Shown: positions 4,263-64,000, counted from the first letter of the stretch. The stretch: DNA of 64,000 nucleotides from Oculina patagonica (GCF_052425735.1 NC_135766.1:26102001-26166000), one strand, 5' to 3'. The notes: generated from the letters alone by a model not told the origin. Program-made: numbers and translations.

Positions 4263-7200
4263 ATGGCAGAGTTTCAATATCATGGATCAGATCATCTCCA
4301 AGCTGCTGCATTTGATTGCCTTGAAGATGGCTATTATGGTCGAGCAATTGAACTTTTCCAAGAGTTGATTGGTCGAATAAAATTTAAGTTGAAACTTGTT
4401 CAAGGTGATCAGTTTGTCGAAAACTTGGTAATCCTTGGCAAACTCCGAAGAGGACTGGCAGAAGCTTCCTGGCACATCAACAGACCCGAAAGTGCTTTAC
4501 AACTAATACAACTCTGCATTACTGATAATTGCCATGAACTTTCTGAGGTAAGTGATACATACACAGGTATAAAATCTGTTGCATTCCTCAATGGGAAGAA
4601 TCTGGGGGGGGGGGCTTTTGTGCATTTGAAATACAGTATCATGTGGCGCAGTTCTAGGAATGATCTGTAAAATGAAAACTGGTACTCTATTCTAGTTCAG
4701 GAGTCCCAAAATCATAACCCTCTGGGTGGCACATATACCTGGGTAGGTATTTTGGTGAAGTTCCCCCTTGTGGGAATTAGAACACAGGAAACTCCCCTTT
4801 TTTGTTTAACTTTATTAAACCCCAAGGGATAAAAATTTATTACTCTGCCCGCCAAACCTTTATTTCAGCAGGAAAGGGGCCGTCCAATCAAAAATGTAAC
4901 TCCTGTTTGAGATGCTGTAAAATTGTATTTCTATTTGTCTAGGAAAGTGCAATTCATTGGGCAACACTTGCAGAGAGAGCCAGATTATTTAGAGAAACAC
5001 AGTCGATACTCATTGGCTATGAAATCGCTCTTCACTTTATTCCTGCACATGATGTACTCAATAGAAGTCGTCTTTTGTCAAAAATGCTGCTGTTATGCTG
5101 TGAGGCAGGGCCATCCTTCCAAAAGGAAGCCGCCACACTTTTAACAATTGCGTGTCAAATGGGAGATTGTGAATTTGAGGTATGCATTTTTACCCTGGCA
5201 ATTAATTTGTGAATGGTATCTGAAAGCATAAATAGAGTTGTACCCTGATTACTCAATTCTTCAAAGGAAATAATTAAAGGGGTAGAGTTATCAATGGTAA
5301 ATTAGTGAGAAAATGGCCTGGCCCGGCCATTTTCAACACAAGGAGTGGAATTGAGGAAGGGTCGAGTAAGCAGGAGGTTCAAGTTATTGCGGTATCTAAG
5401 GTTAGAGCCAGGTCTCATGACATCTAGAACACTACTCAGTATGTTGATACTAGAAATTTAAGATGAAAAACAATTGCCTCAGTTTGAGTGGCATCCCTGG
5501 ATACTAGCTATCTCAAGAGGGTGGTTAAGGGGGGGGGGGTAAAGATCGTGTTTCACGAAAAATAAATCGGCCCTTTCACAATTCACAAAAAATAATAATG
5601 GCATTTCACGCTTCACAAAAAAAAAGATTTTTCTGACATAGCATACCGTTACATTTTGAAAAGTTACATCCAAAGCAAAGCCTTGTTAGAGGTTTTCACT
5701 ATTTGTCCGCCTTGCATTCTCAGGGCGTTTCAAAAAGAAAACCAAGCTCTGAGTTCTATGTATCATGAATAGCACCATCTTCTCCTTCTACAAAATCAAC
5801 AGAATCGATGACCCGTCATCGTATTCGGAATGCTGATTGTCTCCTGGGTCCCTAGATGCACCTTCTCTTCTCTCGTCCTCTGATAATCCTGGTTGTTCTT
5901 CGAATTCTAACCATTCTCCTTGACGGATAGCGGTCTGAAACATATTTAGAGGAAGAGTTTCAGCTTTTAACTTGGTGGTTTCTTATTGGACTGTTGTTTG
6001 TTTTACGCACTTTGTATGTGGTTGTTTCTAGATTTTATGTAACTAACTACTCTTTCAATTTATCTTTAGAAGGTGGCAAAAATTTGGATGGATTGTGGAA
6101 CGAAGTTTATGTCAACAAAAGCTTTTGTAAAGATGTCTATCACATGCTTCACTCTGGCTTTAAAGTTTTTGCCAAGCACTGACAATGCCTTGAAAGCCAA
6201 TGTCAGTTATTCTAGAGCTACAGTCATCCTGACTATCAGTGATTCGACCCAGTTTGACCTAGCAACCAGTGATGCTAAGACTTGTGTTGAACTGTGCCCC
6301 TCTGTCAAGGTAATGATAGTGTACATTCTTTATTTAAGAAGTCCTTTGTACAATAATTATTGTTTTTTCTTGACTGGTGTAATTATTTACTACAATTAGA
6401 GAGGCCTGATGGGGTAAAATGGGAACTGGGATTTGGGCAACTTTTAGAGTGAAAATGTGATTCACTGTACTGGGACTGTGAATCACACATAAATAAACAG
6501 TGGAACTGGGACTGAGATTTAAAAATTGGGAAAATGGGGCTGGGAAATGAATTGGACAACAGTTAGGATGGAAACGGGATTTTATACCCCCCCTCCCCCC
6601 CTTCAGGACCCTCCTAATTAACAAATGGTAAACGTCATAGCGTGCACTATTGAGTTACAGATGCACGCGGGAGGTTGCTAAGCACGAAAGATGCGTAAGA
6701 GTCGCCCGAGGCGATAGCCGAGGGCGACTCTAGCTTCTTGAGTGCTTAGCAAACCTCCCAAGTGCATCTGTAACTCAATAGTGCACGCTATGACGTTTAC
6801 CATTTGTTTTATAGCACAACTTTTAGGATATTTATTAAAGTTTCTTTGAGTAAAAGTGCGCGCGCTTATTTGAAAAATTGCGTGTAGTGCTCGCGTAAAC
6901 GCTGACGAAAACCTAAAAGAAAAAAACAAACAAAACAAAGTTTTGAATTATTTCAAACTTGCATTATACCTCAAAGTCTTTCAGCATTATGGAGAAATGG
7001 TTTTTCTTATGTTTAGCTTTTTAAATTCACAGGAAAATCGAGAAAACTCGTAAAGTAGTGGCACTTTCTTGTGCCATGTCGCAACAGATCAGCGTGCACC
7101 CATGGGCAAATAGTAGACGCTAAATTAACCAATCAGAACGCGCGCTTTACTTTAGTTGTGCTATAATATAAGTTGTCCTGAACACCCTAAGTGAGACCAA

Positions 7201-10200
7201 AACCTGCAATTAACACCCCCTTTTTTAAGCGCTACATTTCCTGGGGTATTCAGGCTTTTCACGCGTTTGGAACAAGGGGTTAGTTGTCTTTCAATGTAGT
7301 ACCAAATGCTCAGCTTAACTGGAAAAAAAAAAACACAGAAGAAACGTGACAATTAGTAAAGATGTCGACATTTGAACTAGAAAAGATAGTGAAAATATCA
7401 GAAGAGTTAAACCTTATTTTATACCCTATCATGTATGAAGTTTAATTTTGGTCTAATAAGCTATAATAGACATAATAAGCTCAGGTAAAATCCTCTTTAA
7501 TTTATTACAGGGTTACACACTGTTGTGGAAATGCTGTCTCCGCGCCCATAAGTACGATGATGCAATAGCAGCATTTAGAAAAGTACAAGAAATGTTAAAA
7601 GACAAAGAAAACGACAAATATAAAGAATTTGTCAAGTTTTTCCAAACATCACTATCACAGGCAGGTAAAGTGATACTTTTGTGCATTTTCACGTTTGAAA
7701 GACGACCTAAGGCTTATAAATTGAGTTTATTACGATCCTAGTGCAGCAGAAAAGTCGCAGCAAGTTTCAGATATATACTATTTTGAATTTTACAGGCATA
7801 GAGAGTAAATTTCGTCGAATTTAAGATCCTGATTTAACACCCCAACATTTTCTGTCACTCACTTGTAGTTTGGCATAAACTGAGTCCATGATAAGTTGCC
7901 CTGTTTAAAGGAAAAGAAAAACATTTAATTTGCGAGCTTTATTAGAATGAGATAAAAAACTGGATGTTTTCAATGCCTTGAGTTTTGGTAATTTTCCCGC
8001 CACATTGTCACGTCGGAATCCGCGAGACGCGTCCGCACCGCGGTCGACAGGGCGGGAAAAACGCTGGTGAGCGCTTGGCTTTTCCCGCCATAAACCTGTC
8101 ACTTTTGTAGGAAACGGAAAAATTGTCATCTAACTTTCTTTTGTCTTGTACAACAGCATTTGAGGTCTTCAAAACTGGCTGCCCTGTTCCGAAATGTTTT
8201 GTTCAGAAGTTAATCAGCGAGTGTGTAGCCAAGCGAGCCATTCAGGATCTATCTTTACTTTTCTGCGAAGGCTGGGCCAAAGAATGCAACGCTTCTTGTG
8301 TTCCACTTGACTTGGTGATGGCATCCGATGTTAAAAACCGTGAAGAGCTAGTACGAATCCTCCTTCAACACAACGCACTTCCAAGGGGTCTTCCGACAAG
8401 CCGCGAGTCACCGCTTTCAATGTGTCTACATACAGACAATTCTGACATGGCTGTCATTCTGTTAGAGCATGGAGCTGACGTGAATGATTTGTTGGAAAGC
8501 GACGGAGAAAACGCCTTACGTGCTTCACTCCGAATCGGTCTCAAAAAAGGTGAGATATTGATTGGCTAATAGAAAATAAATAGATTTTCACCCGTCCAGC
8601 TTACAGCGATACATACTTTATTGTCACTTCCTGACAAAACATTTCTTTCCTTAGTCTGATGATGTTATAGCTTATACCGAAATATTTAGTAGTTTAATTT
8701 TAACAAGTTCTTCATTAATTTCTAAGTTTATATTGGGCACAATGAACCTATTCGGGTTATCCTTCGTCCTTTAATATGTACTGAAACTCTCATCAGGTGC
8801 TGGGTTTTGGAGTAACATCGTGTCAACTCCACCTCGACACTTATGAGATCTTAACTGGTCAATGACAAATCAAATCGAACCTACGAGAAAATTGTCAAAA
8901 GATGCCAAAAATTTATCAAAATGCGGTGCACTGTTGTTGAAACTTTAACTGGTAAGCTTGAGAAGTAAAAGCACATAACCGACAGCAGACATGTTTTGTA
9001 AGGTGTTAAATCTTCATCTCGTTTTTGCAGGAAATTTCGCGATCTTAAAGTATTTCCTCGACAGCAAAAGATACTCAGTGAATTTCCAGGACAAGAATGG
9101 AAACACTCTTCTGCATATCCTGTGTCGAGGAAACATAAATTCAAAGAAACAGGAAGCCATCAACATTCTTCTCGGAGCAGGAGCAAATCCACTGATCGCT
9201 AACGACGAAAAGAAAAAACCTATCGACCTTCTTTTTAATTTAAGGCGAGTTGTAGATTAATTTTTCTAAATTTCTAGAGTTAAGGTAAAAAGTTGCATCA
9301 AGCAGAAAGCCAATTAAAAGTCAAATGGGATTCACTAACGGACCTGTCCAATCATGGCTTTGTTGCACAAATGGTATAGCATTGGAAATGTACCCCAAGG
9401 GAAAGCTTCGAGCCACTGATTTTTTCCATTGGTCAGGATTTTCAGTGTAGTGTAGCAATAGCTGAGGCGATGTAATTAGCCCTTCAGTTCGCAAGATCTG
9501 TACTTATTCGTTGCAATATCATTTAATTGTCTGGCAGACTTACTAGAACGTTTTAAGGAATTCAACAACTATGAAGTACTGTCTCGATGAACTAACACTG
9601 AAGTTCATTCCTTTGAAATGATCACCTTATCAAGAATATCTGAAGAGACTGTAATTTCTTTTCTCTTTGATATCCCAGGGACAACAGAAGAAACCTCCTT
9701 AACGCAGCCGAGGAAAACTTCAAAAGTCCGCCATCGTCTGACCAGAACACTGCAAAGAAAGAAAGTTCAACCAAACTGGACTTCAAGTCCCAAAAAGAGA
9801 AACGTTTACCAGAACGATCAACAACTCCATCACCTTCAAGCAGCAGTGAGACCTCTTCTCCTCCCACGCCGTCTTCAAAATCAAATAATTCAAAAAAGGA
9901 GCCTCTGTCTGCTGTACGTGAACGTATTCAGACACTTATAAAGAAGTTAGATGTCCGTGCTTGGTTCAAGAAACTGGCTTCACATGAGAAAGCTAGAAAA
10001 GCGTCCACGAGAACCGAGAAGCCCGATCTTGAAAATAATCAAAACCAAACCGATGGAGTGAAAGAGGTGAGCCGGACAGCCCAAGAAAAGAAAGACGATT
10101 CAAGTCATAACAACGAAGACAACGGTTCTTTTGTTCCTATTACCTCAGAGGCATGTATCGAGGGAGCGTTTGAGGGTTTGCCATGGGAAGTGGAATGCAC

Positions 10201-63800: not shown

Positions 63801-64000
63801 AAAGACCAAAGTACTCCTCACATTTGTCGATCTCCATTTGGGTCACAAAATTTGGATCGCGAACATTCAACGAAAAAATGAGATCTATTACTTTTTTAAC
63901 TAGCACCACCAACTTCCAGTTATTGAGGAGTCCTGTAATTTCGTCACCCGCGGTCTCAAAAAGAAATTCAACACACTCAAGTTCTCCGCAGGTGTTAGAG
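60896..64000 (-). CDS. Divergent TRANK1-like paralog, 3' part (exon 61416 to beyond 64000, terminal exon 60896-60978)
   Basis: Uninterrupted 843-aa ORF aligning throughout with 14048-17195 (CQRFLVGIPC, ESGEAERAVILVLTMLCNCGQS, DESGCGICNV). Same phase-1 intron (G|gttggt) and terminal exon VWSLE...HVPGLKKNKK*. Confidence 0.88.

Follow-up and report, generated by a model that had tools for sequence, protein, structure and literature searches.

Two old TRANK1-family paralogs, one of them a mosaic, and a pseudogene relic in the coral Oculina patagonica

Background

Three copies of a TRANK1-family gene, namely an intact gene (copy A), a decayed relic (copy B) and an open paralog (copy C), are present in a 64,000-nucleotide stretch of the Oculina patagonica genome (C9:26102001-26166000, hereafter the window). 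The two gene types represented here, A-type and C-type, are paralogs of old standing, and they were arranged in tandem, with the C-type gene upstream and both on the same strand, before the corals compared in the present analysis diverged. The history favoured here, with moderate confidence, is that of an ancient tandem pair in which the A-type partner was duplicated, one of the duplicates was truncated to the relic B behind C, and the helicase exon of C was converted by A-type sequence, with purifying selection acting on the genes. TRANK1 is a large and poorly understood gene, which is a locus in human psychiatric genome-wide association studies and is induced by interferon or viral mimics in vertebrates; we know of no established function for it even in humans.

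Results and discussion

Age of the A-type and C-type lineages

The relationships of the copies were examined in the longest exon of the gene (hereafter the big exon), together with L017, L018 and L019, which are contigs from other coral-associated assemblies. The DNA tree of this exon has the form ((C,L019),(L018,(L017,(A,B)))), in which all forks are supported at 100% or close to it and B is the sister of A (support 100/99); this implies that B split from A after the lineage of A had split from the species of L017 and that the lineage of C is older than the split between A and L017. Synonymous divergence (dS) in the big exon is 0.64 between A and L017, 1.14 between C and L019 and 1.62 between A and C, and a clade of A and C is rejected in the protein tree of the same exon by the approximately unbiased (AU) test (p-AU 2e-60; this and the p-values given below are to be taken as indicative only).

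A complete C-type gene is carried by the Tara Pacific coral scaffolds L026 and L027. In L027, L029 and L030 a second complete gene lies 5.8 kb downstream on the same strand, and its big exon belongs to the A-type clade, as (Tara gene 2,(A,L017)) with a support of 97/100. The tandem order of a C-type followed by an A-type gene is thus ancestral. In O. patagonica the place of the A-type partner behind C is occupied by B, and an intact A with the same downstream flank sits on a neighbouring contig. No recent lineage-specific gain of functional copies was observed, the only duplicate formed after speciation being the dead copy B.

Structure of the three copies

The original prediction had proposed three TRANK1-family copies in the window, and their coordinates proved to be accurate, 60896 being the last base of the stop codon of C and 57333-59900 correctly delimiting the relic. 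The features are listed in Table 1, in which coordinates are positions in the whole window; window-extended positions lie on the same scaffold beyond 64000 and were obtained after adding the neighbouring 50 kb.

Copy A had been described as intact, and its exons are indeed open throughout. They match full genes of other corals exon for exon, and the first two are single-copy in the assembly as judged from genome-wide searches, which covered the 529-Mb O. patagonica assembly. No Pfam family was found in the big exon of A.

Copy B had been taken for a decayed 3' copy, which is borne out by its truncated 5' end and its lesions. Read in the register of A, it carries four stops (TGA 59714, TAA 59678, TAA 59353 and TAG 58597) and at least eight frame-shifting indels, all of them in the 5' two-thirds; six stops are counted when it is read in a single frame, as in the genome search. 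The segment 59899-57568 of B aligns to 14790-17239 of A with a DNA identity of 77-83%. The open part of B shares 69% identity over 325 amino acids with the open reading frame (ORF) of A at 14048-17257 (+) (E = 4e-141), and the annotated protein KAL9962911.1 ('hypothetical protein ACROYT_G032062 [Oculina patagonica]') is 99% identical to this open part. Between A and B, dS is 0.35 and the ratio of nonsynonymous to synonymous divergence (omega, dN/dS) is 0.40, a value in keeping with drift of one partner during part of its history.

Copy C had been described as intact-looking and strongly diverged, and each description holds for a part of the gene. All the exons present are open, whereas the 5' end is cut by the end of the contig at ~76071 (window-extended). 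Strong divergence from A is seen in the 3' part, where the big exons share 48-50% identity, but not in the helicase exon, which is 84% identical to that of A, putatively by conversion. The open frame of the big exon of C comprises 1085-1109 codons (ORF 61408-64662), and the ORF of A mentioned above matches 61381-63912 (-) with 48% identity over 855 amino acids (E = 0). The position of the last intron is shared by A, B and C, as had been predicted; A and C use the same donor, AG/GTTGGT, at 17195/17196 and 61416/61415, respectively, and the homologous terminal mini-exons end in HVPGL(R/K)KK followed by a stop.

The gaps were also checked against the copies. The 169-N gap touches none of them, and the 500-N gap at 49570-50069 joins separate contigs and interrupts no reading frame; ORFs predicted across runs of N were discarded as artefacts.

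Table 1. Coordinates of the TRANK1-family copies, assembly gaps and duplicated segments
Feature	Position	Strand	Remarks
Copy A, A-type TRANK1-family gene	4263-17512	+	ATG at 4263; exon ORFs all open
A exon	4263-4670	+	open ORF
A exon	6073-6399	+	open ORF
A exon	7460-7738	+	open ORF
A exon (ankyrin repeats, ANK)	8111-8566	+	Pfam Ank_2, E 5e-10
A exon (ANK)	8979-9257	+	Pfam Ank, E 5e-7
A helicase exon	9671-12622	+	UvrD-like superfamily 1 (SF1); PF00580 33-35 bits against a cutoff of 23; UvrD_C trace
A 208-codon-type exon	13037-13711	+	UvrD_C_2 trace (Pfam)
A big exon	13913-17195	+	alpha-solenoid, 1114 codons
A terminal mini-exon	17432-17512	+	
Downstream flank of A	17411-25083	+	duplicated, inverted as assembled, at 50070-57437
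169-N assembly gap	39132-39300	.	AT-rich non-coding spacer; outside all three copies
Segment R1	41743-49569	+	last 7.8 kb of the contig before the 500-N gap; repeated directly after the next 500-N gap
Med26/TFIIS N-terminal-like ORF in R1	45425-45751	-	Pfam E 2e-9
Right-handed beta-helix/NosD ORF in R1	48641-49438	-	Pfam E 3e-21
500-N scaffolding gap	49570-50069	.	left border of 26-kb contig X, which carries B and C
Flank of contig X	50070-57437	-	collinear with the downstream flank of A
Copy B, relic of an A-type big exon	57336-59899	-	without the first ~290 codons of the exon and all upstream exons
B terminal mini-exon	57336-57416	-	protein identical to that of A
B open part	57485-58573	-	362-codon open stretch; annotated as KAL9962911.1
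B broken part	58574-59899	-	stops and frameshifts
C terminal exon and 3' untranslated region (UTR)	59980-60978	-	coding 60896-60978, stop TAA 60896-60898
Copy C	60896 to ~74585 (beyond window)	-	open in all exons present
C last intron	60979-61415	-	GT..AG; position shared with A and B
C big exon	61416 to ~64662 (window ends at 64000)	-	old C-type lineage
C 208-codon exon	65308-65952 (outside window, same contig)	-	open
C helicase exon	68504-71599 (outside window, same contig)	-	open
C ANK exons	up to 74585 (outside window, same contig)	-	open
Segment R2	76572-84389 (window-extended) = C9:26178572-26186389	direct orientation	second copy of R1

Mosaic structure of C and selection on the exons

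The likeness between A and C changes along the gene, the protein identity being 84% in the helicase exon, 75% in the 208-codon exon and 50% in the big exon, against 75%, 84% and 66%, respectively, between A and L017. In the helicase exon, the protein tree unites A and C with a support of 99/96, and the alternative in which C joins the C-type gene of the Tara scaffolds is rejected (p-AU 0.0034). The 208-codon exon gives the opposite picture: C pairs with its Tara C-type counterpart (support 94/90), and a grouping of A with C is rejected (p 0.008). The DNA tree of the central helicase exon rejects (A,L017) (p 0.02). The dS between A and C is not uniform along the helicase exon: it lies at 0.10-0.25 in alignment columns 100-700, reaches 0.5-0.8 in the 3' third, the latter being the level seen between A and L017, and amounts to 0.30 over the whole exon. 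As judged from these comparisons, C is a mosaic in which the helicase exon is A-type and the 208-codon, big and terminal exons (the last ~1300 codons) keep the old C-type sequence. The switch of topology along the gene, with the O. patagonica paralogs grouping together in the helicase exon only, and the step in dS within that exon argue for gene conversion between the A-type gene and C in the Oculina lineage, which probably took place in more than one tract.

A single exchange of modules was weighed as a different origin for the same mosaic. Contig X, the 26-kb contig that carries B and C, would then be a duplicate of the whole A locus into which a C-type 3' module, extending from the 208-codon exon to the poly(A) site, was inserted; the module would have displaced the A-type big exon, of which B would be the remainder, and C would be a chimera and not a converted old gene. 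Such a history would account for the collinearity of contig X and the A locus outside the C-type module, for the similarity of dS over the helicase exon to the A-B value (0.30 and 0.35) and for the start of B ~80 bp past the putative end of the C transcript (~59980). It is nevertheless improbable, as a complete C-type gene lies directly upstream of an A-type gene in another coral, which makes the order ancestral and an insertion unnecessary, and as no donor C-type gene was found elsewhere in the O. patagonica genome by the genome search. In addition, the patchiness of dS between A and C in the helicase exon (0.10-0.25, 0.35-0.41 and 0.5-0.8) fits conversion tracts of different ages better than one breakpoint, so that a single-breakpoint swap is regarded as less likely than conversion.

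Five to seven sequences per exon were available for the comparisons of selection, in which omega was estimated pairwise by the method of Nei and Gojobori (NG86). The values range from 0.11 to 0.28 in the helicase exon, from 0.07 to 0.20 in the 208-codon exon and from 0.13 to 0.32 in the big exon. No 100-codon window of the big exon exceeded 0.53, and a dN/dS above 1 in the variable domain was thus not observed in the pairwise comparisons, in which all the exons are under purifying selection.

Transcripts and sequence variants in public runs

Sixteen public runs hold parts of 57300-63300, and the contigs of four of them (X2, X4, X8 and X9, from four studies) were aligned to 57301-63300 at a likeness of at least 80%; the runs were used as Logan contigs, the depth of which is no copy number. 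C is a transcribed and spliced gene. Its last intron is removed, with the joint 60978/61416, in X4, X8 and X9, which are RNA-like and belong to three studies, and a 5408-nt contig of X4 spans the 3' UTR and the big exon with 2-4 differences and extends upstream. The terminal exon and 3' UTR, within which 60101-60300 is a repeat, are covered by contigs of the same three runs, and a loose end with poly-T at 59980, found in X9 only, may tentatively mark the poly(A) end. In X2, an independent DNA sample, C occurs as a 5.5-kb contig with 2 differences, together with exact B; other contigs of exact B were found in X4 at low depth only.

A-like contigs occur in all four runs; they differ from B at as many sites as the reference A does and bear the letters of A at 38 of the 40 best-supported sites. 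A-like and C sequences are found together in X2, X4, X8 and X9, as in the reference assembly, and this co-occurrence in the reference and four other samples argues against A and contig X being simple alleles. A third A/B-like class, 5-12% distant from B and with A-like letters at many of the sites that differ from B, is present in X8, X9 and X2 (57600-59600). In X8 it is spliced to the terminal mini-exon and has the highest depth of the run, which implies that other colonies express a B-like gene or allele that the reference lacks. Spliced C transcripts and A-like and B-like transcripts are all present, and more A/B-like variant classes exist than the two in the reference. The summed contig depth in X2, 40-126 over B against 11.3 over C, had suggested many A/B-like copies; this reading was rejected, as Logan depth is not copy number and the sample may be pooled.

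Assembly layout and the question of alleles

Contig X extends from 50070 to ~76071 between two 500-N gaps, of which the second, at 76072-76571 (window-extended, beyond the window), forms its right border, and it is collinear over its whole length with 7507-25083 of the A locus. The homology to the downstream flank of A begins at the first base right of the gap, 50070 (blastn), and the identity rises from 88% through 89.7% to 94.7% toward 25083/50070; two copies only of this flank exist in the genome, except for a short high-copy element at ~18000-18760. The segments R1 and R2 on the two sides of contig X are likewise present in only two copies in the genome. Their alignments end exactly at the contig ends, with 97.5% identity including indels, 1.1% substitutions and identical ORF products. 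They resemble overlapping haplotype ends of one locus and are probably an unmerged haplotype overlap, and for this reason the position, orientation, order and spacing of contig X are unverified. The inverted layout and the 40-kb spacing of the copies, as assembled, are not established. Flipping contig X would give a tandem repeat (gene - flank - spacer - R), with identity rising from B via the flank to R. Order and orientation in this stretch of the assembly provide no basis for claims of inverted duplication until checked with reads.

The same features raise the question of whether contig X is simply the other haplotype of the A region, placed alongside and flipped by scaffolding. There would then be a single site with a C-type and an A-type gene, at which one haplotype lost C and kept A and the other kept C and a truncated A-type gene (B), and the three copies would be two alleles of one or two genes. 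The resemblance to false haplotypic duplications in scaffolded long-read assemblies is considerable, with a short contig lying between N gaps of fixed size, collinear with its neighbour, and contig ends that overlap at an allelic level of divergence. The identical ORF products and few substitutions of R1 and R2 are as alleles would show, an allelic bubble would give the same rise of identity toward the end of contig X, the first exons of C are absent from the assembly and those of A single-copy, contig X terminates in a high-copy repeat, and contigs of C, exact B and A-like sequence occur in X2 at a similar depth of 10-13. Unlike in such artefacts, A and contig X are 5-36% apart, including a 3-kb exon of another old lineage, with dS of 0.30-1.6 (0.30-0.35 for A-B and the helicase exon), which is far above the divergence of R1 and R2, and both are present in every sample. 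Copies segregating as alternatives among individuals were not observed in these few samples (X2, X4, X8, X9 and the reference), and if A and contig X were alleles all five would have to be heterozygotes, with a chance of at most ~3% under random mating. Moreover, the third A/B-like class could not be supplied by two haplotypes of one locus. An origin of contig X as an alternative haplotype is therefore considered unlikely, although far from negligible.

In the history preferred here, the A-type gene would have been duplicated together with its flank at a dS of ~0.35, A and B being distinct loci and not alleles; one A-type copy, B, would have become redundant and truncated, and later gene conversion between the A-type gene and C would have homogenised the ATPase motor, leaving paralogs that may share a motor and differ in a partner- or ligand-binding solenoid. 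Several points weigh against this history. The identity between the A locus and contig X climbs toward one end of the latter (77, 82, 88, 90 and 95%) and reaches the allelic level in R1 and R2, a steady rise which would be explicable by later conversion of the flank or by allelic origin; with R1 and R2 at 1.1% substitutions, contig X cannot simply sit where it is drawn. The first exons of C were not found in the assembly, which holds the first two exons of A once only. The non-coding flank of A and contig X is 5-12% diverged, less than the synonymous sites of A and B, and a single date of duplication fails to explain this mismatch. Furthermore, some of the runs may derive from one and the same genet, and the groups submitted to the AU tests were chosen after the identity tables had been seen.

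Other elements were noted in and around these segments. The two ORFs of R1 (beta-helix and Med26/TFIIS) represent an unrelated gene or genes sited between the TRANK1 copies. Short interspersed elements with tens of copies of 84-96% identity on all scaffolds are found at 18000-18228 / 18500-18713 and 6615-7170, and at 9480-10000 of L012; one of the high-copy elements has inverted arms, resembling a miniature inverted-repeat transposable element, and one makes the 5' end of contig X. A tandem array of ~1 kb with a period of ~72 bp lies just after R2 (C9:26186776-26187795, window-extended 84776-85795). In L017, a Maverick/Polinton-like element at 15726-23252, with a protein-primed DNA polymerase B, an rve integrase with a chromodomain and an HNH protein, lies directly downstream of the A-type gene.

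TRANK1 family membership and genome-wide count

A, B and C are members of one anthozoan subfamily of the TRANK1 family. The architecture comprises ankyrin repeats, which stand N-terminal to the helicase as in the TRANK1 family, a UvrD-like SF1 helicase and a C-terminal TPR-like alpha-solenoid of ~1100 residues with conserved Cys clusters. By sequence, TPR repeats gave sub-threshold Pfam hits only, and TPR-like helix pairs make up the beginning (residues 1-285) of the fold predicted for the big exon. A phmmer search of a library of 1.8 billion proteins with the big exon matched 104 cluster representatives, among them named TRANK1 proteins of Nematostella, amphioxus (Branchiostoma), turtle (Carettochelys), sea stars (Patiria), brittle star, molluscs (Haliotis, Mizuhopecten) and sponge; the matches to named TRANK1 proteins fall in their C-terminal thirds (E 2e-26 for turtle TRANK1, P0038, and 8e-44 for amphioxus TRANK1, P0022). 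The coral genes thus have in common with named and vertebrate TRANK1 the ankyrin repeats, the core of a UvrD-like SF1 helicase and an extended C-terminal region, to which the big exon is homologous, but the C-terminal identity to vertebrate TRANK1 is only 20-25% and one-to-one orthology with it was not found. In a quick family tree with long branches, at least four anthozoan subfamilies, to one of which these genes belong, form a clade apart from the bilaterian sequences, and for each O. patagonica copy a separate nearest relative is found in another dataset.

Besides the three copies described here, the family in O. patagonica includes two distant full genes on C5, at 4.09 Mb and 3.16 Mb, with 26-39% identity in the big exon, and a 3' partial copy on C14 (C14:20617001-20637000). 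The latter is a copy of the paralog at 4.09 Mb with 84-96% DNA identity; it adjoins a 500-N gap and consists of the 208-codon exon and a big exon with an open frame of 1040 codons, without a helicase exon, and is thus the second case of a 3'-only copy. In the paralog at C5:3163327-3169560 the helicase exon is open and the big exon matches in pieces that include a TAA, so that it is either a pseudogene or has extra introns. No remnant of a third related lineage (P0002/L018 type) was recovered when the genome was searched with the A-type big exon, and no contigs encoding the protein P0004 were found.

Proposed birth-and-death evolution and pathogen-driven diversification

The window had been viewed as a birth-and-death cluster under pathogen-driven diversification. 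The first half of this view survives in part, since clustered paralogs and a pseudogene do occur within ~75 kb as assembled, and signs of turnover are seen in the relic B, the third lineage that the genome search did not recover, the partial copy on C14 and the extra A/B-like variants in individuals; recent functional gains, as stated above, are lacking. A recent, lineage-specific expansion driven by pathogens, with C as a rapidly diversified young copy, could draw upon the same relics, missing lineage and individual variants, and also upon reports from other animals. In crocodile cells, TRANK1 ranks with the genes that show the strongest induction by a viral mimic (log2 fold change +4.72; PMC5702629), and in Aplysia it is listed as interferon-stimulated within an antiviral co-expression module (PMC8195618). 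However, a search of the literature library revealed no paper connecting TRANK1 with corals or cnidarians, and none that ties it to cnidarian immunity; among the titles listed, none on this assembly was identified. The divergent part of C has an ortholog in another coral, which also retains the tandem arrangement; every exon (0.07-0.32) and every window of the big exon has an omega well under 1, and the only young duplicate is the dead one. Purifying selection and stable orthology of the paralogs, which had been named in advance as observations contrary to diversification, are largely what was found, and a pathogen-driven expansion at this locus is hence regarded as very unlikely.

Several TRANK1-like genes of another invertebrate, Patiria miniata (XP_038048886, XP_038048899 and XP_038049686), also lie on one contig, but these form a single cluster at 90% identity and are young copies, whereas the live copies of O. 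patagonica are old and only the relic is young.

The diverged C-terminal solenoid

The AlphaFold model of the big exon (predicted local distance difference test, pLDDT, 83.8; predicted template modelling score, pTM, 0.70) is a long alpha-solenoid. A fold search with this model returned generic TPR/ARM/HEAT scaffolds only, with template modelling (TM) scores of ~0.1; the matches to the N-terminus of separase, Ctr9, transportins and intraflagellar transport (IFT) proteins at this level were set aside as too generic for a functional assignment. An alignment of 26 homologs revealed cysteines conserved at three positions (C364, C373, C378) and an invariant CxxC motif formed by C926 and C929 (residues of the big exon). 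These cysteines are common to cnidarian and bilaterian TRANK1 proteins and are possible zinc sites, C926/C929 lying in a loop of low confidence; a sub-threshold hit to Torus, presumably a CCCH-type domain, was noted at residues 361-390.

The paralogs thus have a homogenised motor in common, and the scaffold in which they differ is of a type that usually binds partners; the solenoid may be the part that sets specificity, through the binding of partners or ligands. A more far-reaching and rather speculative extension, which we put forward with little confidence, is that the anthozoan TRANK1 paralogs form a modular sensor family, in which the motor would be kept uniform by conversion, the solenoid would have long been distinct (dS above 1) and the A-type partner would be structurally variable among haplotypes, occurring as the intact gene, the truncated B and the expressed B-like variants. 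If true, this would be the logic of NLR-like immune receptors. Like the animal NLR/NACHT and MHC clusters, which evolve by birth-and-death and conversion, the family has paralogs that lie side by side, a truncated pseudogene and partial copies at other sites; its sequences vary among individuals, and a conserved NTPase motor adjoins a repeat scaffold that is more divergent. In contrast to them, the live genes number two here and not tens, both are old and keep their synteny between corals, omega nowhere reaches 1 and homogenisation is limited to the helicase exon.

Conclusions

In corals, TRANK1 comprises several lineages and includes a conserved tandem pair. The evolutionary history of the motor is separate from that of the C-terminal scaffold, which provides a handle on the question of which part of the protein carries specificity, and structural variation among colonies may exist at the TRANK1 locus.

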